A stretch of 64,000 nt of DNA from Entomortierella parvispora E1425. Lineage: Eukaryota > Fungi > Mortierellomycota. Shown in pieces: positions 7,331 to 63,660 of this stretch. The position numbers and the translations under genes were made by a program. Positions within the stretch are counted from its first letter, which is position 1. Every line of letters starts with the position of its first letter. The stretch spans positions 930,001-994,000 of the forward strand of contig BQFW01000015.1 of the NCBI GenBank assembly GCA_020891255.1, in the 5' to 3' direction. Under the pieces are notes generated by a model. The model worked only from the letters and a program-made list of their open reading frames with translations. It ran no database searches and was not told the origin of the DNA.

Positions 7331-9213
7331 TTACATCTTAGGTCCACCTTTCTTCACCTTGCCTGAGTATTGCCTCTCCCTCTTCTCTGAGACCCAACGC
7401 TCATGCTTTCTCCAAAAGGCCAGGGTCCGGTCGTCCAACCTCTCACATAATCCACGCTCCACTGTGGCCTGCTCAGAGAAGACCAAAGCTTCGCCTCGGC
7501 CTTTGACTCCGATATCGCTAGGTAAAAGTCCGCTCATAAACCCCACACCAGTGGAAGAGTTATCCCTATGGCAACGGGTGAGCCCATATTGGCGGTTAGT
7601 CTCGCCCCACGCGAACAAAATCCAGATCTCCATCATTCGACGCGACAATTCTTTCTCGGCGGGATCCTTGAACAGAGCCAAAGCGGCGTCGGAGCCAAAC
7701 ACAAACGGGATCTCAATCGCATGATGAGCCCCGATAAAGATTCCCATATCCTCCATGAGCTTCAACGGACGATCAAAGTGGAACCGAACTAGGTCCAATG
7801 CTGGACTCTCCTTCTTCATCAGAGCTAGACTCGTTGCATGTGTTGGGTAAAGAAAAACTGAATCCGAGATAACCCTGGACGAAATCTGACGAGCCTCCTT
7901 ATCTGTTTTGGGGATCCCATAGATCTGTTCGAATTCCCGACGACTGACTTCATCTGGTGGACAGTTGCGAGCAAAGAACTTATCCCATCTTTTCATTGAT
8001 TTGGCGCCCAAGAACGGAACAAACGTTCGACCTTCATCCCGACAATCGCCTAACATGACAGCCTCGATTCCTTGATCGTAGGCGCGAGGGTCGTGAAGTT
8101 GTATGCGAGGATCCTGATGGATTAGGATGTCATCGATCGTAGGGGTGAACATGCCTACGCGTCCAAAGTCGCCAGCCTTGACCAACTCTGTAGCATCAAT
8201 AGCCCTCAATAGCTCCAGCTTCTCGGCTCCTGTCAATGGCTGGTCAGCGGCGCTCTGCAGACCAAAGTGTCGGCAAAGATGATCAAAATACCGTTGTCCT
8301 TCAATTTCAGCTCTTCCTGCAGCCATCGTGGTAGCGGCTCCGGATTGCAAGATGACTTTTTGGAACAGACCATGATTTTCAGGTATCAAGAGATGATAGC
8401 TGATAGACACTGCTCCTGCGGATTCTCCAAAGGCTGTGACATCTTGAGAGCTTCCTCCAAAAACATCAATATGGTCCCGAACCCACTCCAAAGCCATTTT
8501 TTGATCCATAAGACCCCAATTGCCAACACTGCCTCGAGACCGTGCCAGATTTTGAGGGAGAGTGGCATCGTGCTTCAGTTCTGCAGAGGACATAAAACCA
8601 AGGTAGTTGAGTCGATAATTGATGGTGACTAAAATCACGGGTCGTCCAATACGAATCGAATGCGCCACAAAGTTGGATCCATCATAGAGAGGAAGGGCGT
8701 TGCTTCCGTGAACAAAGCCTCCACCGTGGATCCAGACCATGACGGGAATCAAGGCGTTCGCTTTGGAGAGATGGTCTAGGGGTGCAAAGATGTTCAGATT
8801 TAGGCAGTGCTCCTCCGAATAGGTGATGACTTCCTGAGTTGCTCCAGCATTGTTATCGTCTCGGTTCATAGCCGCCATGGGGTCTGCTTGAGCTGGCTGT
8901 GGGCAAGCAGGTCTAATATAATAAAGATCAATAGAAGGAGACAGATACTGAGTACTGGCGATCTTGCGTGATAGTTTGTCCAACTTTTGCACATAGACCT
9001 GTTGGTCAACCTGCAAGCTGTCTCTTACCCCAGAACAGTGCAATCGCGAACATTGCTCCATGCAGCTGCTTTGAAGGCTGGACGCCAGCGCTCAGGTACG
9101 GTTGCATAAGGAACGTTCAAGAACTTTGCAACTGAAGGTTGAGTCTTAACCTGGAGACCTTGAACGGCGCCACATCCAGGGATCGTTATTTGAGGGTCGC
9201 GAGACACAGGCAT
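7331..9213 (-). CDS. Type-B carboxylesterase/lipase (alpha/beta hydrolase)
   Basis: Exon 1 9213-9029 (MPVSRDP..FLNVPYA..PERW), intron 9028-8913, exon 2 to 7331. Motifs SEEHCLNLNIF, WIHGGGF, GESAG nucleophile, DEG acid, AHHAIEIP histidine. Confidence 0.92.
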
Positions 9214-11074: not shown

Positions 11075-12371
11075 TCAGTTGTCGTCATCCTCTTCGTCTT
11101 CCTCCTCTGCTGCATCGGCACTGCCACCAGCGCCATTTCCATTGATGCCTGTACCCTTTGCTTTCCTCCGCTTCCAGACTGTTGACGGCGCCGCTGTTCT
11201 GTCTGAGAGTCCAATCAAGATCTTTCCATCCCACGCACTGTGACAGGTTGGGCAAACCGGACGGGCCATGTTTTTAAAATAGGCAGAGGCGCAGTGCTGA
11301 TGAAGCCGAGAACTGCATGCAGCGACCGTACAGCGCTGTCCTTTGGTAATGATCTCCATGCACAAAGTACATTCCTGAATCTGATCGTCATAAGTTTCCT
11401 TTAGGAAAGTTTGCAACTCCAACAATGACCTCATCGACAACGAGTATGCTCCAGCTCTAGCATCACAAAATAAAATTAAATTAAAATTAAAATAGTCAGT
11501 AAGAGAGTAGGATAGCTGGACAAGTAACGCTGGCAGGAACAAAGAAAACACACAAGGACTTACGTCGATTGAATGAACCACTGGTCAGCCACAAATCTGT
11601 CCAACAAAGCTTCGGCATCCTTTTTTGTCAGGGCCACAGCCTTATTTTCCTTGTTCTTCAGCTTTCCTGCTTCGTGAAGAGCAGCCGTTGAGCTGATGCA
11701 AAATGCCTCATCATCCGCCATAATGATGGCGTCCAGCTACCATGGAAAGTGATTGATACAAAAAGGTTAGATTCTACCGATGACTTTGCAGCCCGCGTCA
11801 GTCGAATCTGTTGAGTTTTCCTTATGCCCCTTACCAAATGTTTAAAGTACTCCAGTTCCGTTGGGCTATATCTGGTCGCTACCTGCGCAATCTTTTGACC
11901 ATTGGTGTTTGTCTACGTTGTTAACAGGGAAATATATGAAGTCCAGTCAGTTAAAAAGCTAACAGTACAGTGAAGCTCCTTTTTTGTTTGACCGAGGATT
12001 TGACAAATTTACCAGGGCAATAACTGGAACGCCAGTAACCTCGTCCTGTGCTCGTCGAAACTCCAGCTCCACACTATTGAGTCCTTCATTCAGCTGTGTG
12101 ATAAAATCCGAGAAGTTTTCTCGGTCGTAGGGTTCTACATGGCATGGAAAGTGGTTTCTAAAACGATGAGTTTTTTGGACCATTGAGGAAAAGATGTCAT
12201 TGTTGTTTTGCCACCAAAAAAAGCGAAAAATAGTGGAATCCTTTTCTTGCCTTCTGTCACTGTGCAGACTCGGCTGTATAGATCCTGCGCGGTGGCCTCG
12301 GTCATAAGACGCTTGGAAATGGCCGCCTGCAAGTAAAGTCGATGCAGGTCTGTGAATCCTGATGTGGCCAT
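11075..12371 (-). CDS. NSE1: Smc5/6 complex non-SMC subunit Nse1 (winged helix + RING-like)
   Basis: N-terminus HRLYLQAAISKRLM, INEGLNSVELEFRR..DEVTG..IALVN, C-terminal CTLCMEII..C..C..RLHQHC..CPTC; multi-exon. Confidence 0.9.
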
Positions 12372-46698: not shown

Positions 46699-48183
46699 AT
46701 GCTGGCCGTACTGGGTCAACTGCAGAGGCTATGGTACCTGATCCTCTCCTGCTCCATCGCTTGCCTTATCAGCGACATTACTCTGTCCAGTATCTCAGAC
46801 CCCTCTATCTCGGCCTTCATCTTCATCCCACTACCTTTGGTTGCCGACGTCCCAACGGTCCTCATCTTTGCTTATGGCATATGGGGAAAATCTCAGCCTT
46901 TCCTATTGCCGTCGTCCACATTGAACCCATGCATACGATGGACCCGACTGCTGGGAACAGTGCTACTTTGCCTGCTTTGGATTATAAATACGTTCATCTA
47001 CAGTTCCAGTGAAATGCTCATAAGAAGGATCTTTGCTGGAATCGCAGCCTTGAACTCCATCTTGATCTTGGTCGAGATGCTCGGCAGCCATCGGATTGGA
47101 AAGGAACAACGAAGGATTCTGAAGAAGGAGAAAAGAGACCAGCAGGAAAAGTTGGAGCTAAAGCAATTGAGGCTGCAAAAAAGGAGGGAAGAGTTGCACC
47201 AAGGAGATTCTGGATTCGAGAGTCAGGCGATTGAATCCAGGGAGAGCATGGGAGGACAGAGCGCCTTTGATAGGCAGAACAGTGGCTCACACAGCGATCA
47301 TGACGAGGATGAGGACGATGAGGGGCGACTCAGAGAGGTAGAGATCATTCGACCAGAGGCGATCGACCCTTCGACTGTCATCTTTACCCAGCAAATGATG
47401 TACGAAAGGCAACAGCGGGAGTACTTTTTGCAGTACCAGCAGTACCTACAAAGTCAGCATCATCTCTCGGAACAGGAACAACAAAACGCCAGTGCTGGAC
47501 CCTCTGGTTCTGTGCTGCCTGTCGCTGGCTCGATGGGTGGTGAAGATGGGAAATACGACGATATATTCCTCGAGTCCTCATACAAGTTCGAGATCCCCAT
47601 CGACGGACCTTTGGTGAGTCAATCGACGGGTGGCATTGCAACAGAGAAGACAGAACCTGCTTCTATAGCACCATCGACACCGCCAACCACGACGGATGTC
47701 AAAAATCCATACATATACCTTCCTTCGGCCCCTTCTTTGATAGGGTTGAACATGCCAATGCCCACTGCTGCTTCCCACAACTTATCCTCGCCATTCCCCC
47801 ATACGGCGTCCTCAGCCTCATCCTTGTCAAGGCACTCCACTCTCTCCTCGTCCTCGTCCACCTCGGTCGTTCACTCTGATGAGAACCTCTCTGCAGTGCA
47901 AAAACAAGCCCTTGCAAGCTCAAGCCCTTACTCTGAACAGGACTACCAATCCAAGAGTCAAGAATTTGCCTCAGCCCCACCATACGAAAGCCGGCAGTCT
48001 CTTCAAGTTCCTGTGCCGCCTTTGATACCTGCACCAGCACTAACTCTAATTAGCACCACGGCTGGATCCGTGGTTACCGGGACAGTGTTTGACGCTCAAA
48101 CAACGGCAGATTCGGATCAGATCCAAGGCAATGACCGTCAACCTGTCAGGAAGATTCACGGTGCAAAGCGCTCGTCTATATGA
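46699..48183 (+). CDS. Hypothetical protein: four N-terminal TM helices (MARVEL-like), coiled coil, S/P-rich tail
   Basis: 494-aa single ORF. Confidence 0.75.
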   Translation: MLAVLGQLQRLWYLILSCSIACLISDITLSSISDPSISAFIFIPLPLVADVPTVLIFAYGIWGKSQPFLLPSSTLNPCIRWTRLLGTVLLCLLWIINTFIYSSSEMLIRRIFAGIAALNSILILVEMLGSHRIGKEQRRILKKEKRDQQEKLELKQLRLQKRREELHQGDSGFESQAIESRESMGGQSAFDRQNSGSHSDHDEDEDDEGRLREVEIIRPEAIDPSTVIFTQQMMYERQQREYFLQYQQYLQSQHHLSEQEQQNASAGPSGSVLPVAGSMGGEDGKYDDIFLESSYKFEIPIDGPLVSQSTGGIATEKTEPASIAPSTPPTTTDVKNPYIYLPSAPSLIGLNMPMPTAASHNLSSPFPHTASSASSLSRHSTLSSSSSTSVVHSDENLSAVQKQALASSSPYSEQDYQSKSQEFASAPPYESRQSLQVPVPPLIPAPALTLISTTAGSVVTGTVFDAQTTADSDQIQGNDRQPVRKIHGAKRSSI

Positions 48184-54026: not shown

Positions 54027-55547
54027 TTATTGTCTGGCCTTCTCGTTCTCCAGGCGCTGGTACAGCATGTAGATTGCCATCTGGTTCGACTCGGGGGTTC
54101 CTGTGACGGTGACCAGACGCTCATTGCCTCCATTGTTCAAAGGCTCCGAGATCTTGATATGTGATCCAGACATCTGACGGATTTCATTAATCTTGGAACC
54201 ACCCTTGCCAATGACCGATCCGACCATGTCGTTGGGGATGTAAATTTGTTGGGCAACAGATCCATGAGGAATCATGGGTCCTCCACCTCCATGATGACCG
54301 CCGCTTCCGCTCCGCGAGGACGATGAGGATGAGGATGGGTGTCCCATGTAGTCCTGGCCATATCCGCCCATTCCTCCCTGTCCTGGGTATCCACCATAGT
54401 AAGACTGATGGTGGTGAGAAGAGGGGCCATGGGATGGGTATCCACCCATGCCTGAAGGACCGCCGGGGTAACCTCCAGCGCCGCCGCTACGACCCATAGG
54501 TCTGTAGGGGATAACATTAGCGGTCCGGTCACGCTCGCTGTGCTCCTGCAAGACGACACCCACGTGGTAGACTGCGATATGGATGGCATCAGGAACACCT
54601 GTGATGGTAATTGTGCGCTCTGTCGAAGCAGGCAAGATCTCCTCGGATGCCACCAAACGCGCGCCAGAAGCATCCTGAATCTCCTTGATCTTGGATCCAG
54701 CCTTGCCAATCACAGAGCCCATACGATGGTGAGAAACCAACAAGCGGATCGCGGTCGATTCTGTCTCGGGGGCCGCATCGGGCTCAATGTGCTCAGCAAT
54801 CACTTTTTGCGCCACCAAAGAGTATGCCTAGACATTTACATAAAAAAAATAAAAAAAGGACGGTTGGCCCACAACTCCTACAACAAAAACAACCCATCGT
54901 TGACACGAGCGATTCGACATAAACGAGAGGTTCTTAATTACCTTGGCGACGGTATCAAGGGGTCCAGAGACGGTCAAGATACGCTCGTAAGCACCAGGAA
55001 TCATCTCAGAGATAGTGACTTTGGCTCCCGACTGCTCACGGATCTCGCTGACATTCTTGCCAGACTTTCCAATAATGACACCAGCATCCTTGGTCGAGAC
55101 AATCGATCTCAAAGCAGTTGTTGGAGGGATATCGCCTTCGACAGCAGCGTCATGTCGGCGAGCTATTTACAGTTATCGAGTCCAACCGTTCAATTGGGGA
55201 AAAAAAAGATTAGTTGAAATTACAGAATGTTTAGGATTTCTAGGACTCTCAGGATGATTTATCTACAGGCAAGATGAAAAGGAGGCGGGAAAACACTTAC
55301 AGCCATCATCAGAATCCCGGCGGCGGTGTTGGGGGCGCTGAGGAGAGGACGAATCAGACTCATTGACGGCAGCGCGTTTATGTCTACGGTCTTCGGCATC
55401 CGAATCATGCTCATCAGAATCATCAAGAGCTCTTTTCTTGTCGCGATCTTCTGAAGTGGCAGTGACAGCAGCAGACCCATCAGCAACGGGGGCAGTCGAG
55501 TCGACATCGGCCGACGCGGTGGCAAGGGACTTTTCGGTATCAGACAT
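54027..55547 (-). CDS. Triple-KH RNA-binding protein (hnRNP K/PCBP, Pbp2/Rnc1-like)
   Basis: Three GxxG loops: IIGKSGKNV, VIGKAGSKI, VIGKGGSKI; three exons. Confidence 0.92.
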
Positions 55548-56608: not shown

Positions 56609-56688
56609 AATCTGGACAATCTGGACTATCTAGTCAGGGTTGGTATCAGGGATTTTCTGGTCAGGATTGGTACGAGGGACTTTCTGGT
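56609..56688. repeat. Degenerate 9/27-nt tandem repeat
   Basis: caatctgga x2, then ggactatctagtcagggttggtatcag / ggattttctggtcaggattggtacgag / ggactttctggt. Confidence 0.65.
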
Positions 56689-56748
56689 TTATCTAAGACT
56701 CTGATCCTCCTTGCAACACGCTACCGGCACCACTGGTACACGCTACCG

Positions 56749-57334
56749 TTTTTTTTTTTTTTTTTTTTTTGCACATTTTATTTGCTATGTCGAGCCAAAG
56801 AAGTGAAGTGCGAGACCAAACTATCTACAACCTGAGCAAAGCCGCGTGGTCCAGACGACAAATGACCCCGGATCCCCGCGCAACAAATGCCACGACTCGT
56901 CGCCGTGTTATAAAGAAGAGTAAAATGTTACAAAAAATGGATCTTCCCCATCTTTTCTAATGTCGATAAGTGAACCTGGCCACGCACACAAGCCAGTAGT
57001 CGCTGGTCAGCCAGCGTAGGATCGTCTTGGGCACCTGGGCAGAGGCCTTTGTGGTGGTCAGTGTAAGCCTTGCCGCATTGGCAGGTGCCTGGCGCAAGGA
57101 TCGCACCAGAGGCATTGTTCCACGGCTGCCCCGACGGGGCTGCTTGTTTTTTCATCTTGGGGCGGATGCCTTGTGACTTCTCCCAGGCAATGGTGACTTC
57201 GCACCGTGTCTTCCAGATACGTGCAAGGGCGTCTCTGTCCAGGCGGCGGATAAACTGGTGAGCAACTGCGACCACAACCGAGCGGGGTCCTTTAATAACC
57301 GGTGTCCAGGCTGTGATCAGCGCCGAGTGTAACA
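56749..57334 (-). mobile_element. Short 5'-truncated non-LTR retrotransposon copy (end of ORF, 3' UTR, 22-nt poly(A))
   Basis: PolyT 56749-56770; 3' UTR nearly identical to that of the long copy; ORF end ..CQCGKAYTDHHKGLCP..KIHFL*. Confidence 0.92.
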
Positions 57335-57349
57335 GTGACCCCGGATCCC

Positions 57350-57351
<2 letters not shown>
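57335..57351. repeat. Target-site duplication, left copy: GTGACCCCGGATCCCGG
   Basis: Directly abuts the long copy's polyT; identical to 62587-62603. Confidence 0.9.
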
Positions 57352-57388
<37 letters not shown>

Positions 57389-57545
57389 AACATTTTATTT
57401 GCTATGTCGAGCCAAAGAAGTGAAGTGCTAGACCAAACTATCTACAACCTGAGCAAAGCCGCGTGGTCCAGACGAACAAAAGACCCCGGATCCCCGCGCA
57501 ACAAATGCCACGGCTCGTCACCGTGTAATAAAGAAGAGTAAAATG

Positions 57546-58364
57546 TTACAAAAAATGGATCTTCCCCATCTTTTCTAATGTCGATAAGTGAACCTGGCCA
57601 CGTACACAAGCCAGTAAGCGCTGGTCAGCCAGCGTGGGATTGTCTTGGGCACCAGGGCAGAGGCCTTGATGGTGGTCGGTGTTAGGCTTTCCGCATTGGC
57701 AAGTGTCCGGTGGTAAGATCGTACCAGAGGCATTGTTCCACGGTTGCCCAGTCTGGGCTTGCTTCTTCATCTTGGGGCGGATACCTTGTGTCTTCTCCCA
57801 TGCAATAGTCACTTCGCAGCGCGTCTTCCAGAGCCGAGCTAAGGCATCCCTGTCCAGACGACGAATAAACTGATGAGCAACGGCGACCACGACAGAGCGA
57901 GGGCCTTTAATAATTGGCCTCCAGGCCTCGATCAGAGCCGAATGGAGCAGTCCTTGGTAAGCAGTGACGACAGAACAAGCCGATGCCAACGGAGCTTTGA
58001 GCTGTCCCTGCTCAGGGGGTCGGAAGGCTGACAAGTCATGAAAAGCAGAGTAAAGTGATGCCCACAAGAGCGTGTCCGATGGTTGGTACCATTGGAGTCG
58101 TTTCGGGGCTGCAACGTTGGGTGTGCGGGCTTGTTGCTTGCGATGTCTGGTGTCAGCGTCCTCATTGGCTTTCCTGATAGCGGCCCTGCCCCACTTTGGT
58201 ATTGAAGCCACCGCATCCGCCCAAATCAGTTGTTGTTGATTGTATGAGTTTGGACAAGTCCACACATGGTCGTTGTCCTCTGGGGCTGCACGACACAGGC
58301 AACAGAGTGCGTCTGCGTACATATCTGGGTGTCGCGCCTGCATGACTGTGAGTGTCGGAAGCAT
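57546..58364 (-). CDS. Retrotransposon C-terminal region (CCLC..EDNDHVWTC zinc knuckle; CQC..H..C)
   Basis: 272-aa ORF continuing the polyprotein after a 1-nt shift. Confidence 0.8.
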   Translation of the reverse strand: MLPTLTVMQARHPDMYADALCCLCRAAPEDNDHVWTCPNSYNQQQLIWADAVASIPKWGRAAIRKANEDADTRHRKQQARTPNVAAPKRLQWYQPSDTLLWASLYSAFHDLSAFRPPEQGQLKAPLASACSVVTAYQGLLHSALIEAWRPIIKGPRSVVVAVAHQFIRRLDRDALARLWKTRCEVTIAWEKTQGIRPKMKKQAQTGQPWNNASGTILPPDTCQCGKPNTDHHQGLCPGAQDNPTLADQRLLACVRGQVHLSTLEKMGKIHFL

Positions 58365-61300
58365 CCCATGGAGTTTTTTTGATGTGCTGTGTGCGTCGAG
58401 ACGTGTCCCCGCGGCTGCTGAAGAAAGTATGGACTGGCCGTTTGTCGTGGATGATCGAAAGAGCAGATCGCCACTCCACGTCGGTCAAGTCACTAATAGA
58501 TCGCTTGACACGTTTCTGCGCTGTCCACTGTTGATGTCGACGGATAGTAGTCTGCTGTTTAAGAAACTGCCGCAAATCTGACTCCAGTTGTTGACCGTGG
58601 CACGAGGCTGTGAAGGTAATGTCGTTTTGAGTGCTGAAGTCCGCATGCCATGGTGTCGTGTCCTGCTCGACAGCGTTGGTAGCAATCGCGTCAGCCATAT
58701 CGTTTCCCTTGTCACCACTGTGTCCTCGAACCCATTGCACCGCTGTCCGGCCCTCTCGTTCTGCCACCACTGTCGCCAAAACTGCCCAGAGGCATGCATG
58801 TGTTGCCCGTTGTCGCTTTCGTGGAAGTGTTTTGTGCCGGTCCAGGACTAAGTCGTGATATTGAGTAACGACACCCTCATTGTCGAGGCGGACCAAAATG
58901 TCTTGCCCTGGAGGCATGGCGACGATCGCAGCAATAAGTCCCATAAGCTCGGCTTTGCCAGAAGAGGCTTGTCCATCTGTGCGGCCAGGGATAGAGTAAG
59001 AGGTGTCCGTGGAAAAGTCAGCCACGCCAAAGGCCATAGCGCACTCTTCAGTACCTGCTCGGACCATCGAGCCGTCCGAGTATAGGACTCGCTGGTCTTG
59101 TGTGATTGGTGATTGACGAAGCTGGTGTAAGAGTTCGGCTTGGGTTCGGGGCATCCACAGCGGGCCTACTTTGACAAGGTGGTTTTGCTGTGGGAGAGGT
59201 AAAGTAGGAGGTGAAATGTGAAGAGTATGAACAACACTTGGATCAATGGTGACCGTAAGTGGATGTTGGTGCCGTCCAATACGTTCTCTGTTGGTGATCA
59301 CATCCTGGTCCCGCTCCTCCGCAGCCCAGGAGATGTACTCGGCTCTGATAAGCTGCCTTTCTTCTGCCGCCTCCAGGTGTTGTTGGTGTTTGTTGTCTGC
59401 GTAGTCGTGTGCGTCCTGGATTTTGTGAGCAAGTCTATCTGCAATGTGTCCGAGCTGGATCTGAGCACGAGCCTGCAACACTCGGAGCCCCCGCTTGGCA
59501 ATACTCTCGGCCGCTTTGATGGCCTCGGCTAACCTTTGCGGGTTCTTGGCTAGTTGGCGGCGGTAACGGGCAGCATGGACCTGAAGTTCTTGACGCCTCT
59601 TATCCACTGCAGACTGCAACTCTTGAATGATCTTGGTCCGGGCAGGAATAGTGCCCACGTCGGCTGCATTGAGCCGTGAGGTCAGCTCGTCGTCAAGCCA
59701 GCGTGATTCAGCTCGCAACAACGCGTCTGCCTCTGGTGGCAGTCGCGCCAAGTACGTCGTAGGCGGGGTGTCAACGACAAAGTTGTTGTTAGCATCTATA
59801 CTAGCAGAGACTGAACGCGAGACATTGGTTAAGCCGACAGTAGTTGCGGTGTCAGGAAAGAGACGGCGGAGGGTAGGGGCTGCAACAAAGTAAGGTGAAA
59901 TAGAAGAAAACTGAGAAGACAAAGATTGCGAAGATAACGGTGCTGATAAGGATGGAGAAGAAGGTGATGGTGAACAGATAGGTGACGATGGAACAATAAC
60001 AGGGAGGGGTGAAGGGGGTGAAAAGGAAGGGTCGCTTACTCCCGAAGACAGTGACGAAGAAGATAGAGAAGAAGAAGGTGACGATGAAGAAGGTGCAAAT
60101 GAAGAAGAAGAAGAAGAAGATGAAGAAGAAGAAGAAGAAGAAGAAGGAGACAAAAAAGAAGAAGGAAGGGAGCGCGACCTGGGCTCGTATGGTCCCTTTT
60201 TCTCTTTTGGCTCTTTTTTTGTTGTCTGGTCTTTTTGGCTGTGAGGGTGTGCAGACCGTGCAGTAGGTGGGTTGTGCCTTGCCTTTTGTGGGATGGGGTG
60301 ACGTGAGCCTTTTTGTTGTTGTTTGGGTTCTTTTGCCTCTTTTTGTTGTTTCTTTTTGTCCTGCACGGTCTTGTTTGCATCTTGTCCACACTCCCCACTC
60401 TTGTTCCGCACCACCGTTCCCACGCGCGCCTCGCTCCAGTCCTCTTCCTCTTGAACCTGCTCGCGCGCTGCCTCTTTTCCTTTTGGGCTCCGTGGTCCTC
60501 TTGGTATCTCATCGTCCTGCTCCTCTCCCGACGACTCTTGATCCGTGAACGCCATATCCATCTCCCAGATCACCTCTTCTACAACCTCTGCGCCGTTGCC
60601 GTCGCTGGGGCTGTGGTCCGCACTCTGTTCTAATGAATACAATTGGGTAAGTGTGTCTTTGTTTTTGTCTGGCTTTGGTCGTTGTTCTTCATCTTTCCGC
60701 TTGAACGAATGAGTCACTGCCGTAGCAGCTGTTGTAGACACTGCCTTTTGAAGTTCGTTTTTGTTTATACTCACTCGCTCAAGATCACCTGTAGTTGTTG
60801 TGGAGGCCTCCTCTGCCCGGAGCAGAGCACGACGCAGGATGCGTGGATCAATCAACGGCTCTGAATCGGTATCGGACAACTCGTACACGCTGGATGTCGC
60901 GGACAGAGTTGTGGCGGGTGCGTTGTCCTCGTTCGTTTCGGCAGAATCAGAGTCGCTGGCATCAGGAGGTGTGCAGAGATGGACAGTGAGAGCAGCGTAC
61001 CATGCACGCATCCCGCCAGACAGGCGGTGTCGGTCCTTGAGATCGCGCCAAGATGCAAGGTGGGATCCATCCTCAGTAACAACGTCGTGCAGGAATACAA
61101 TGCCGTCGCGGAAGAGTTGTGGGCCGATTTTGAAGTATGCTTGGGCAGGGATAAGTGTCGACAGCAGTGTAGATGGCGGGTACTGCGGGAGTTGGACAGG
61201 AGCGATTGTAATGGCCCGGTCAACCAAGAGCCCACAAACCTTGGCGAGAAAATGGTGCTTCTTGACCAGACATGAGCGGTCCGGGGCTTCGAGCGGGTGT

Positions 61301-62577
61301 TGTACAATAGCAGCAGCAGCTTGCAGAGATGAGAAACGAGCAGCCATGACTCTGCCCACCAGACCCTTGTCTTGTATGCGAAGGAGGACTGTCGAAATTT
61401 GCTCCTCAGCCTGCACGTCACCAAAGTGGCGGAGGCCATACAATCGACGGTGGAAGAGGATACTATTGGGCGTGCCAGCCGGAAGACCCACTTTGTGCCG
61501 AATCATAGTCGTATACCGCGAAACTATCGAGGTAACTTCAGAAGGTGAGAGGATTGTGACTGAAAGACGATACAAGATCCGTGGAATTAACACATTATTA
61601 ACCAAGTAAATGGCCTGTTTGTCTGTGACAGCGCGGCGCGAGAGGACGGCACACAAGGATGAAACTTCCTCCATGACCATTCGCTTAGTCGACTTCGGGA
61701 TCCCGTCTTCAGTGAACCACACCCCAAGGGAGCGGACGGCTGTGGTGGAGTTGTGGGCTTGTACAGTTGCGTCGCCAATAGTGATACTGCGGTCGTCTGT
61801 GGAGGCGTTGATGACAATGAGTTCAGTCTTTTTGGGATTAATCTCGATGGCGTTCAAGGTGAAGAATTCTACCGCCACATCCACTGTTTGTTGCATGTTG
61901 GCCTGGGATGGGGCGTAAAAGTTGGTGTCGTCCACGAAGGCGCCTGCTGACACCTGAACTGCAGTGTCCGAGGGATCCTCCAAAAGCCTGGGAAGCCGAC
62001 GCTGGTCTACCAACGAATTGTGTCGCGTTATCACATAACCGAGTCCCGCCTCCATCACTGCATCTAAAAGGACGTCGTAGCAAATAAGCCAGAGGATAGG
62101 ACATTCAACACCACCCTGATCAAGGCCGCAGCGAGGGTGATATGGTGCCGTCATTCCAAAGGCCGTAATAACTTGGTTGGTTTTCTCGGTTGCAATGGTC
62201 GTGCAGAGCTGGATGAACATTGGATGGATCCGAAGACGTCTCAGGCTACGTTCAAGGGTCTGGCCCGGTCCGCAGGTTACAGAGTCAAAACAGCGGCGGA
62301 TGTCCTGGAAGAGTATCCATGCTTCCTTATTGTGCTCCCGAGCATCTTCCATCACCGCATTGAGGATGTGAATTGGATCCTTAGTGGTAGTGCCCGGAAG
62401 CACTGAGAAATTCGCGCCACGCAGGACCCTATGTGTAGTTAGAACGACGACCATGCGGTCAACCAGAATGGAGAACAGGATTTTGCGCCCATGTTCCAGT
62501 AATGTCAAGGGACGGACGTCTGTCAAGCGACCTGTCCAGCAAGGCCCTTTGGGGATGCAGTACAGAAGGCCTTTCAT
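58162..62577 (-). CDS. Retrotransposon polyprotein: RT, long disordered insertion, RNase H
   Basis: 1471-aa ORF; shifts frame near 58374-58380 into the zinc-knuckle ORF. Confidence 0.9.
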   Translation of the reverse strand: MKGLLYCIPKGPCWTGRLTDVRPLTLLEHGRKILFSILVDRMVVVLTTHRVLRGANFSVLPGTTTKDPIHILNAVMEDAREHNKEAWILFQDIRRCFDSVTCGPGQTLERSLRRLRIHPMFIQLCTTIATEKTNQVITAFGMTAPYHPRCGLDQGGVECPILWLICYDVLLDAVMEAGLGYVITRHNSLVDQRRLPRLLEDPSDTAVQVSAGAFVDDTNFYAPSQANMQQTVDVAVEFFTLNAIEINPKKTELIVINASTDDRSITIGDATVQAHNSTTAVRSLGVWFTEDGIPKSTKRMVMEEVSSLCAVLSRRAVTDKQAIYLVNNVLIPRILYRLSVTILSPSEVTSIVSRYTTMIRHKVGLPAGTPNSILFHRRLYGLRHFGDVQAEEQISTVLLRIQDKGLVGRVMAARFSSLQAAAAIVQHPLEAPDRSCLVKKHHFLAKVCGLLVDRAITIAPVQLPQYPPSTLLSTLIPAQAYFKIGPQLFRDGIVFLHDVVTEDGSHLASWRDLKDRHRLSGGMRAWYAALTVHLCTPPDASDSDSAETNEDNAPATTLSATSSVYELSDTDSEPLIDPRILRRALLRAEEASTTTTGDLERVSINKNELQKAVSTTAATAVTHSFKRKDEEQRPKPDKNKDTLTQLYSLEQSADHSPSDGNGAEVVEEVIWEMDMAFTDQESSGEEQDDEIPRGPRSPKGKEAAREQVQEEEDWSEARVGTVVRNKSGECGQDANKTVQDKKKQQKEAKEPKQQQKGSRHPIPQKARHNPPTARSAHPHSQKDQTTKKEPKEKKGPYEPRSRSLPSSFLSPSSSSSSSSSSSSSSSFAPSSSSPSSSLSSSSLSSGVSDPSFSPPSPLPVIVPSSPICSPSPSSPSLSAPLSSQSLSSQFSSISPYFVAAPTLRRLFPDTATTVGLTNVSRSVSASIDANNNFVVDTPPTTYLARLPPEADALLRAESRWLDDELTSRLNAADVGTIPARTKIIQELQSAVDKRRQELQVHAARYRRQLAKNPQRLAEAIKAAESIAKRGLRVLQARAQIQLGHIADRLAHKIQDAHDYADNKHQQHLEAAEERQLIRAEYISWAAEERDQDVITNRERIGRHQHPLTVTIDPSVVHTLHISPPTLPLPQQNHLVKVGPLWMPRTQAELLHQLRQSPITQDQRVLYSDGSMVRAGTEECAMAFGVADFSTDTSYSIPGRTDGQASSGKAELMGLIAAIVAMPPGQDILVRLDNEGVVTQYHDLVLDRHKTLPRKRQRATHACLWAVLATVVAEREGRTAVQWVRGHSGDKGNDMADAIATNAVEQDTTPWHADFSTQNDITFTASCHGQQLESDLRQFLKQQTTIRRHQQWTAQKRVKRSISDLTDVEWRSALSIIHDKRPVHTFFSSRGDTSRRTQHIKKTPWDASDTHSHAGATPRYVRRRTLLPVSCSPRGQRPCVDLSKLIQSTTTDLGGCGGFNTKVGQGRYQESQ

Positions 62578-62586
62578 CCAAGATGC

Positions 62587-62603
62587 GTGACCCCGGATCC
62601 CGG
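62587..62603. repeat. Target-site duplication, right copy: GTGACCCCGGATCCCGG
   Basis: Abuts the truncated 5' end of the long copy. Confidence 0.9.
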
Positions 62604-62640
62604 TGCCAGTGGTGCCGCTACTGTGTCCTCTTCACAGGAA

Positions 62641-62650
62641 GTCACGTGAT
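62641..62650. promoter_or_regulatory. E-box/Cbf1-type palindrome GTCACGTGAT upstream of tRNA-Gly
   Basis: Same 10-mer occurs upstream of tRNA-Val; function unproven. Confidence 0.4.
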
Positions 62651-62699
62651 ATAATGGGATCTTAAATGTTTGGAATAAAGTTATTTCCATCTTGATCAA

Positions 62700-62770
62700 G
62701 AAAGTGTAGTATATGGGTATCATTCCGGCCTTCCAAGCCTGAGAACCGGGTTCGAGTCCCGGCACTTTCA
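62700..62770 (+). tRNA. tRNA-Gly(TCC)
   Basis: Acceptor GAAAGTG/CACTTTC, anticodon arm CCGGC-CTTCCAA-GCCTG, T-arm CCGGG-TTCGAGT-CCCGG; T-runs follow at 62773-62793. Confidence 0.9.
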
Positions 62771-62908: not shown

Positions 62909-63175
62909 TTTTTTTTTTTTTGGGTTTATCTATTTGAGGCCTTGATCGAAGCGCAGTGTAACACTCCTTGGTAGGCAGTGACGACCGACTGAGCCGATGC
63001 CAACGGGGCTGGTGCCAACGGGCTGGTGATCTGTCCCCTCACAGGAGGTCAGGTCGTTGGCGAGTCATGGAAGGCAGAGTACAATGATGTCCACAAAGCC
63101 GTGTCCGATGGCTGGTACCATGGAGGCGGTTTCGGGCGGCAACTTCGGGTTTGCGGGCTTGTTGCGAACGAGGTG
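62909..63175 (-). mobile_element. Decayed internal fragment of the same non-LTR family, preceded by a 13-nt polyT
   Basis: 62934-63175 aligns by eye with ~57915-58140 (e.g. gtgtccgatgg(c/t)tggtaccat, gcgggcttgttg). Confidence 0.78.
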
Positions 63176-63182
63176 GAGCTCA

Positions 63183-63270
63183 CTATCTGACAACCCAGGT
63201 TTCCATGCAATTTTCCAAAGTGTGACTGGTGGGTTGTCAAACAAAACGAACAACCTGGGTTGTCAAATAG
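63183..63270. repeat. 88-bp element with 17-bp inverted ends (MITE-like/hairpin)
   Basis: ctatctgacaacccagg ... cctgggttgtcaaatag (1 mismatch). Confidence 0.65.
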
Positions 63271-63278
63271 ATAAATCC

Positions 63279-63445
63279 TTTTTTTTTTGCTATGTCGAGC
63301 CAAAGAAGGATCCCTGCACACTAAACATTTTACTCTTCTTTATTACACGGCTACGAGTCGGGGCATTTGCTGTTGATAAATGAACCCGGCACAAATACCG
63401 TCTGTCACCTTGGGATCGTCTTCGGCGCCAGGACAAAGGCCGGAG
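63279..63445 (-). mobile_element. Decayed 3' end of the same non-LTR family with an internal inversion
   Basis: PolyT + gctatgtcgagccaaagaag identical to the 3' UTR; 63324-63372 is the reverse complement of UTR sequence; ORF-end similarity to ~63441. Confidence 0.8.
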
Positions 63446-63477
63446 TGAAGTTTGCCTGTTTAACGTACAAAAATGAT

Positions 63478-63517
63478 GACACGTGATATTCACGTACGAT
63501 TATAGTAGTCACGTGAT
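63478..63517. promoter_or_regulatory. Two CACGTG E-boxes (gacacgtgat, gtcacgtgat) upstream of tRNA-Val
   Basis: At 63478-63487 and 63508-63517. Confidence 0.4.
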
Positions 63518-63587
63518 CATAGCTAAATATCAATAAATTCCTGAACCAATCAGCATCCGAGACCTGGCCAATAGGCTTCGTTTCTAG

Positions 63588-63660
63588 GCTTTAGTAGTGT
63601 AGTGGTTATCACATCTGTCTCACTAACAGAAGGTCCCAGGTTCGAAACCTGGCTAAAGCA
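63588..63660 (+). tRNA. tRNA-Val(CAC)
   Basis: Acceptor GCTTTAG/CTAAAGC, D-arm with AGTGG, anticodon arm TCTGT-CTCACTA-ACAGA, T-arm CCAGG-TTCGAAA-CCTGG. Confidence 0.88.

Follow-up and report, generated by a model that had tools for sequence, protein, structure and literature searches.

Why should the target-site duplication (TSD) of a retrotransposon resemble part of the element's own 3′ untranslated region (3′UTR)? The question is raised by a stretch of 64,000 nucleotides from the mucoromycote fungus Entomortierella parvispora E1425 (contig BQFW01000015.1, hereafter the window), in which the 17-mer GTGACCCCGGATCCCGG occurs in two exact copies, at 57335-57351 and 62587-62603, flanking a long minus-strand long interspersed nuclear element (LINE), termed copy B (57352-62586). 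A re-scan of the window found the 17-mer exactly where a preliminary description of this DNA had placed it, together with the exact 14-mer (TGACCCCGGATCCC, 56863-56876) that it has in common with the 3′UTR of a shorter neighbouring element, termed copy A, and the exact 13-mer (57482-57494) that it has in common with the 3′UTR of copy B. The best explanation, to which we assign a probability of roughly 60%, is that the insertion of copy A captured the 17-mer from the UTR and that the insertion of copy B later duplicated it. The preliminary description had mentioned such a capture as the alternative to its own proposal, and it fits the anatomy of the locus base by base.

Poly(T) runs on the plus strand at 56749-56771 and 57352-57378 identify two minus-strand elements with poly(A) tails. 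Copy A is 88% identical to the last 590 bp of copy B over those 590 bp. The open reading frame (ORF) of copy B (58162-62577, 1471 residues) comprises a reverse transcriptase (RT) domain (Pfam RVT_1, 5.6e-15) and an RNase H domain (RNase_H, 2.6e-12), and is frameshifted near 58162-58364 into the frame extending from 57546 to 58364. Its first residue aligns with residue 659 of the 2408-residue ORF2 of a full-length relative (P0002); thus copy B, previously described as the long copy, is itself 5′-truncated, and an apurinic-type endonuclease (APE) domain is not found in it. That domain (PF03372) was found in the full-length relatives P0001-P0004 (43-62% identity), which encode a 717-residue ORF1 and a 2408-residue ORF2 containing it. 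Poly(A) tails of 10-35 nt are present in all copies, while truncation points differ in A, B and the copies at three other loci, L009, L012 and L015, the first being a 94%-identical copy in E. parvispora contig BQFW01000006. By sequence, the element is classified as a poly(A)-type non-long-terminal-repeat retrotransposon with APE, RT and RNase H domains, the APE domain being seen in relatives. Copy B is regarded as younger than copy A because its TSD is perfect and because a 2-kb contig from the source strain is identical to it over 60537-62586 and displays different sequence beyond 62586. Since this identical contig runs past the truncation point of copy B, a second, longer sister copy is indicated.

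Besides the two TSD copies, the only matches to the 17-mer with up to three mismatches in the window are located in the 3′UTRs of copy A (56862-56878) and copy B (57480-57496), giving four matches where shuffled sequence leads to an expectation of 0.13. The distance from motif to poly(A) is 91 nt in copy A and 103 nt in copy B, close to the ~95 nt reported previously. Of 56,000 background 17-mers taken from the window, 0.03% have a 12-mer in common with the two UTRs and not one has a longer stretch (13 nt or more) in common with them, while 0.15% share at least a 13-mer with the whole element on either strand. The match had been ascribed a chance of about 1e-5; it is indeed unlikely at this locus, but the realistic per-locus value is somewhat weaker, from ~1e-4 (UTR only) to 1.5e-3 (whole element).

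The structure of the 17-mer becomes apparent when it is considered as the 5′ junction of copy A. A multiple alignment reveals that the homology of copy A to copy B, to fragment C (an old internal piece of the element; Table 1) and to L009, L010 and L013 ends at 57336, two bases (GT) into the 17-mer. At the opposite end of copy A, the 25 nt preceding its poly(T) align in direct orientation with 62599-62620 at 18 of 23 positions with one gap, a score equalled by 4 of 2000 dinucleotide shuffles (p ~0.002). This direct repeat, which we infer to be the TSD of copy A, starts at the CCGG that closes the 17-mer (57348/62599). Most of its mismatches are transitions, and a CA/TG pair of the kind left by CpG decay is among them, as expected for a copy that is ~12% diverged from copy B. 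Between the body of copy A and this putative TSD lie 11 nt, GACCCCGGATC (57337-57347), a count that depends on accepting the decayed TSD. Together with overlaps of 1 nt with the body (T) and 2 nt with the target (CC), GACCCCGGATC forms a 14-mer identical at 14 of 14 positions to the UTR of copy A (56863-56876), on the same strand as this putative donor and one base better than the match to the UTR of copy B. All bases of the 17-mer are therefore accounted for as the 5′ junction of copy A, because GT, GACCCCGGATC and CCGG fill it.

In the sequence of events that we propose, two copies of one LINE would have inserted successively at nearly one spot, ~100 bp upstream of a tRNA-Gly gene, both with their 5′ ends toward that gene. 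The older copy A, with a TSD at -101 to -77, would have gained 11-14 extra nt at its 5′ junction from the hairpin of its own 3′UTR, so that the filler would be templated rather than pre-existing DNA. The likely route would be either a template switch by the RT at the close of first-strand synthesis or a transient second-strand priming event on tethered complementary DNA (cDNA), and at the joints the filler overlaps the body of copy A by 1 nt and the target by 2 nt. Copy B, the younger insertion, would then have nicked the DNA 12 bp further out (-113), with staggered cuts spanning the 5′ junction of copy A, and its 17-bp TSD would consist of 2 nt of the body of copy A, the 11-nt filler and 4 nt of the TSD of copy A. 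Twin priming was considered as a source of the filler and rejected, since patch and donor are in the same orientation.

Extra nucleotides at 5′ junctions are well described in other LINEs. They are found in ~40% of zebrafish ZfL2-2 copies, template jumping being held responsible for most of them (PMC2666801), and have likewise been seen in the tRNA-targeted TRE5-A (PMC3159450). Similar to the template-jump fillers of ZfL2-2, human L1 and R2 reverse transcriptase, the patch at copy A is a short, non-target and non-contiguous insert between a truncated body and a TSD, joined with microhomologies of 1-2 nt; inserts of this kind are frequent and are attributed to template jumps (PMC2666801; PMC3159450). 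In contrast with those systems, the proposed donor can be named here, as the element's own 3′UTR hairpin ~470 nt downstream in the same RNA, and the filler would later have been duplicated within the TSD of a second insertion.

Several observations weigh against this reconstruction. The flanks of copy A also align in inverted orientation (16 of 18 positions, with 5 of 2000 shuffles as good; 20 of 24 in another alignment), and do so with equal significance, since their core, GGCACCACTGGTGCC, comes close to a palindrome; the putative TSD could thus be a palindromic upstream element. Furthermore, its two copies are only 78% identical, and at 25 bp it is longer than the 17-bp TSD of copy B. In the assembled reads of four runs carrying the same species label, covering 56680-62679, no joint across copy A or copy B was recovered, only repeat-derived pieces; as no empty allele was obtained, the pre-insertion sequence is reconstructed rather than seen. 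A syntenic metagenome contig (L011) likewise gives no empty site, as it matches the window up to 56285 and is devoid of the tRNA genes. Finally, among the thousands of insertions that a survey of this kind inspects, a lone 14-nt match could arise by chance.

The last point leads to the possibility that the 17-mer is pre-existing DNA upstream of tRNA-Gly, that its likeness to the UTR is coincidental, and that the element inserts ~100 bp upstream whatever the sequence. The motif is short and composed of common palindromic words (CCGG, GGATCC), and the 11-mer GATCCGGGGTC is found at two unrelated places in the ~170 kb of fetched loci, above uniform expectation. The 0.15% of window 17-mers that match the whole element would gain weight from the very many insertions inspected, and the TSD assignment of copy A is uncertain. 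Against these arguments stand the absence, among the 56,000 background 17-mers, of any that matches the UTRs over 13 nt or more, and the fact that the matching bases fill exactly the gap from the end of copy A homology to the start of the direct repeat, which chance does not predict. We therefore consider a coincidence unlikely, although it retains an appreciable probability.

Alternatively, the patch may be the remnant of a third stacked copy, very short or largely deleted, rather than filler from the insertion of copy A. Stacks and tandems are usual for this family, being observed for copies A and B, for fragment C and copy D (an old rearranged 3′ end) and at two further loci. In the metagenome contig L001 (1-260 and 10100-10260), a full-length relative with an ORF1 of 717 residues, an ORF2 of 2408 residues and a poly(A) is followed by TC and then by the 5′ end of a second copy in a head-to-tail tandem of full-length elements; in L017 (3520-3645), the 3′ end of a related-family member that displays no clear poly(A) is separated by ~40 nt from a second, 5′-truncated copy starting in the RLWKTRCE...WEK region. 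At the locus under study, however, no further UTR similarity was detected on either side of the 14-mer (Smith-Waterman score of 22 for the right flank, where shuffles average 20.9 and 103 of 300 do as well), and the patch is not separated from the body of copy A by a poly(A). In addition, a remnant of 11-14 nt bounded by microhomologies would be indistinguishable from filler. Such a third copy is accordingly judged improbable. The right flank was also compared with fragment C as a possible old element fragment; the similarity over 62601-62647 is marginal (1-2 of 300 shuffles as good) and leaves the 17-mer uncovered, and it was not used.

The 3′UTRs of nine copies (A, B, L009, L010, L012, L013, L001, L004 and L006) were aligned with a mean column identity of 71%, and RNAalifold predicts 42 base pairs, 12 of which display compensatory changes. 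The motif resides between two conserved blocks, GGCRUUUGUUGYGCGGG and CACGYRGC, and is predicted to form the 5′ arm and loop of a hairpin in which UCCGGG pairs with UCUGGA. In relatives, this position is taken by hairpins that differ in sequence, such as CCCCUCC/GGAGGGG and CCAU/AUGG. The conserved fold assigns to the motif a structural role in the RNA, and the hairpin is plausibly recognised by the RT. Such a role needs no DNA partner.

A DNA partner is precisely what the preliminary description had proposed, namely that the UTR assists target recognition or primer capture by pairing with the target. RNA-DNA complementarity at the nicked target is a feature of R2-type LINEs; in these, as in telomere- and repeat-specific LINEs, the 3′ end of the RNA pairs with the nicked target. 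Applied to the present locus, the hairpin RNA would pair with the nicked target strand (...GACCCCGGATCCC), aiding docking of the ribonucleoprotein or capture of the primer, and UTR-like sites would be preferred; in a weaker form, only the reinsertion of copy B would have been favoured by the patch of copy A. The RNA of copy B does display 13 nt of complementarity to the primer strand of its target, and UTR-like stretches lie less than 100 nt from the 5′ junctions of L009 (93 nt) and L012 (67 nt). The primer-strand geometry is as originally claimed, except that primer and RNA do not match fully over the two terminal bases of the primer (GG-3′).

Ten other 3′ junctions were available for comparison: those of copies A and D in the window, L009 from the genome record, L010, L012 and L013 from European Nucleotide Archive metagenomes (73-84% protein identity), L016, L018 and L019 from Joint Genome Institute (JGI) metagenomes, and L008, a more distant relative. 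A protein-pattern scan of the JGI metagenomes yielded 8 loci, while an exact-pattern scan of the same metagenomes for the conserved 3′-terminal 22-mer gave 0 hits. For each copy, the first 25 nt past the poly(A) were compared with its own last 200 nt. The flank of copy B matches its own UTR over 13 nt (0 of 500 shuffles as good), whereas the longest matches in the ten other copies are 4-7 nt, all within the shuffle range. The GGATCC/CCGG consensus that recurrent pairing had been expected to leave was sought in the same ten flanks and is present neither in those starting with CGGTAGCG, GGATTTAT, TGCTCCAC, TGGTGGCG and GGGAGTGA nor in those starting with GGAACTGG, CTGAAGGA, GGCAAAGT, CCTGGATT and GTGTACAG. 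Likewise, UTR motif and target do not covary: in the subfamilies with a different hairpin (L012, L013, L016 and L018; L001, L004 and L006), no flank changes with the hairpin sequence. An all-against-all comparison of 9-mers in 14 flanks gave 15 shared words against ~13 expected; among the shared words, only those from the CACGTG boxes preceding tRNA genes and from the inverted repeat in the flanks of copy A are meaningful. A CCACTGG...CCGGG motif, perceived by eye in the flanks of the window, L010 and L018, was dismissed as over-reading, the 9-mer counts being near expectation.

The position of the motif points in the same direction. Located 91-103 nt from the poly(A), it cannot prime a copy that has its full tail, and the 3′ end of the primer is mismatched to the RNA; internal priming is ruled against because a primer 91-103 nt inside the RNA would cost the new copy its terminal ~100 nt and its poly(A) tail, both of which copy B keeps. 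Moreover, copy A inserted at the same distance from the tRNA gene where no such site existed. In contrast with the site-specific LINEs mentioned above, in which the complementary segment forms the extreme 3′ end of the RNA and all copies have one target in common, the motif is internal, ~100 nt from the tail, and only 1 of 11 insertion sites matches. Pairing as a means of targeting is thus not supported and fails the test by which the preliminary description itself had proposed to refute it, and we regard it as very unlikely.

What several of the insertions have in common is their position relative to tRNA genes. The TSD of copy B occupies -113 to -97 and the putative TSD of copy A -101 to -77 from tRNA-Gly, while copy D has its 5′ end toward tRNA-Val, ~128 bp upstream of it. 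In the unrelated metagenome contig L015, a 5′-truncated relative is placed head-to-head ~110-130 bp upstream of a tRNA-Pro gene, just beyond three CACGTG boxes. Insertion thus looks directed by the distance to a tRNA gene, and placement upstream of the gene would explain how two insertions could fall within 12 bp of each other with no sequence signal. The rule has exceptions, as L009 has no tRNA gene within 10 kb, and for the tRNA-like strings beside the L001 and L012 copies neither ARAGORN nor Rfam returned a call. In the 5′ flank of L012 (671-757), a UTR-like stretch is followed by an opposite-strand string that looks like a tRNA 3′ half (GGTTCGAACCC T-arm). At 50-115 bp upstream of tRNA genes there are CACGTG boxes, frequently in the form ATCACGTGA, in the window (62645-62650 and 63480-63525) and in L015 (2720-2770), and LINE 5′ ends lie just beyond them both in the window and in the L015 contig, which is from a related fungus.

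This arrangement recalls TRE5-A and NLTR-B of Dictyostelium, whose insertions lie ~50 bp upstream of tRNA genes; NLTR-B also has an RNase H domain like the present element (PMC5006619). Both are APE-type LINEs placed upstream of tRNA genes with their 5′ ends toward the tRNA, and frequent 5′ truncation and repeated hits at one gene are further features in common. The likeness is one of behaviour, and there are differences: the distance here is ~100-130 bp rather than ~50 bp, the host is a mucoromycote fungus (Mortierellaceae) rather than a dictyostelid, and not all copies are near a tRNA gene, as L009 illustrates.

Hairpin-like sequence was also encountered near other 5′ junctions. The 12-mer GATCCGGGGTCT lies 93 nt upstream of the L009 copy, and a UTR-like stretch of ~40 nt, 67 nt upstream of the L012 copy, includes a match at 16 of 18 positions (1 of 400 shuffles as good). 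The bare 11-mer is also found in L004, at an unrelated ORF site. A 13/14 hairpin match at the L018 junction was not counted, as it is probably ORF sequence, the homologous CCTTTGGAC occupying the same place in L015. No TSD was established for L009 or L012. In L009, positions 7918-7937 and 11421-11440 form a possible direct repeat of 15 of 17 positions (TG-TCCACCCAA-GGGA), 715 nt upstream of the recognisable 5′ end; if this repeat is a TSD, 715 nt of unrelated sequence, including GATCCGGGGTCT, were co-inserted at the 5′ end. Taken over six junctions, the 3′UTR hairpin might be a recurrent donor of templated 5′-junction patches, the candidates being the 14 nt of copy A, the 12-mer of L009, the ~40-nt stretch of L012 and the breakpoint of copy D that falls within the motif. 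We hold this generalisation to be doubtful. If true, the hairpin would be held at the integration site, bound to the ORF2 protein or on tethered cDNA, while the 5′ end is joined, and the patches would leave in the DNA a footprint of how the machinery is arranged in the second half of target-primed reverse transcription. As a weaker extension, patches, once formed, may favour reinsertion by pairing. No description of 3′UTR hairpins as preferred filler donors was found in a limited literature search.

Table 1. Features of the locus in window coordinates (feature, position, strand, remarks)
Putative decayed TSD of copy A, left copy (CCGGCACCACTGGTACACGCTACCG)	56724-56748	.	Alignment to 62599-62620
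Copy A, older 5′-truncated LINE	56749-57336	-	Poly(A) 56749-56771, 3′UTR, C-terminal end of ORF2
Copy A 3′UTR hairpin motif, proposed filler donor	56863-56876	-	14-mer identical to 57336-57349
17-mer, left copy of the TSD of copy B	57335-57351	.	Copy A body end GT, filler 57337-57347, CCGG 57348-57351
Copy B, younger 5′-truncated LINE	57352-62586	-	Poly(A) 57352-57378, 3′UTR, RT-RNase H ORF
Copy B 3′UTR hairpin motif	57482-57494	-	13-mer in common with TSD; hairpin 5′ arm and loop
17-mer, right copy of the TSD of copy B	62587-62603	.	97-113 bp upstream of tRNA-Gly
Putative TSD of copy A, right copy	62599-62623	.	77-101 bp upstream of tRNA-Gly
tRNA-Gly(TCC)	62700-62770	+	Head-to-head with copies A and B
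Fragment C, old internal piece	62937-63165	-	~80% identical to copy B 57923-58137
Copy D, old rearranged 3′ end with poly(A)	63280-63460	-	By-eye comparison with copy B
tRNA-Val(CAC)	63588-63660	+	

Fragment C and copy D both reside between the two tRNA genes. Copy D is rearranged by a 68-nt deletion whose right breakpoint falls on the GGATCC in the hairpin motif, by a 49-nt inversion and by a further 28-nt deletion, and its retained motif displays C-to-T and G-to-A changes. Two inverted repeats, each beside a T-run, bracket fragment C: TTTATCTATTTGA / TCAAATAGATAAA (62923-62940 and 63258-63279) and TATCTGACAACCCAGG / CCTGGGTTGTCA... (63184-63200 and 63255-63271). These may belong to a foldback or other small mobile element carrying a LINE piece. 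Within ORF2 of copy B, positions 60044-60168 comprise imperfect tandem repeats of ~36 and ~69 nt, which encode a low-complexity segment rich in serine that separates the RT region from the RNase H region. In one sequencing run from another strain with the same species label (X3; 56680-57279), the last ~600 nt of the element reach 10-100 times the contig word depth of most of the body, which fits massive 5′ truncation or a non-autonomous partner, similar to a short interspersed nuclear element, sharing the LINE tail. The left neighbour of the LINE stack is a three-exon KH-domain gene (PBP2/PCBP-like; 54027-55547, minus strand). The metagenome contig L011 is syntenic down to window position 47302, and the tRNA cluster and LINE stack are absent there.

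A duplex between 3′UTR and target that guides a LINE would be important if true, but it is not supported by these data, and the likeness to the UTR probably arose as a by-product of insertion and not as a means of target recognition. The event is of a known kind, 5′-junction filler, within a tRNA-associated fungal LINE. It provides a base-by-base example of how stacked insertions at an RNA polymerase III hot spot make a TSD look element-derived, a trap for the inference of target preference from TSDs, and it is a rare case in which the donor of 5′-junction filler DNA can be named. Should hairpin patches turn out to recur across the genome, they would be informative about a poorly understood step of LINE integration, in which the second strand is made and the 5′ end is joined. 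The more valuable lead, however, may be the element itself, a LINE of a mucoromycote fungus that lies head-to-head ~100 bp upstream of tRNA genes and in this resembles Dictyostelium TRE5.

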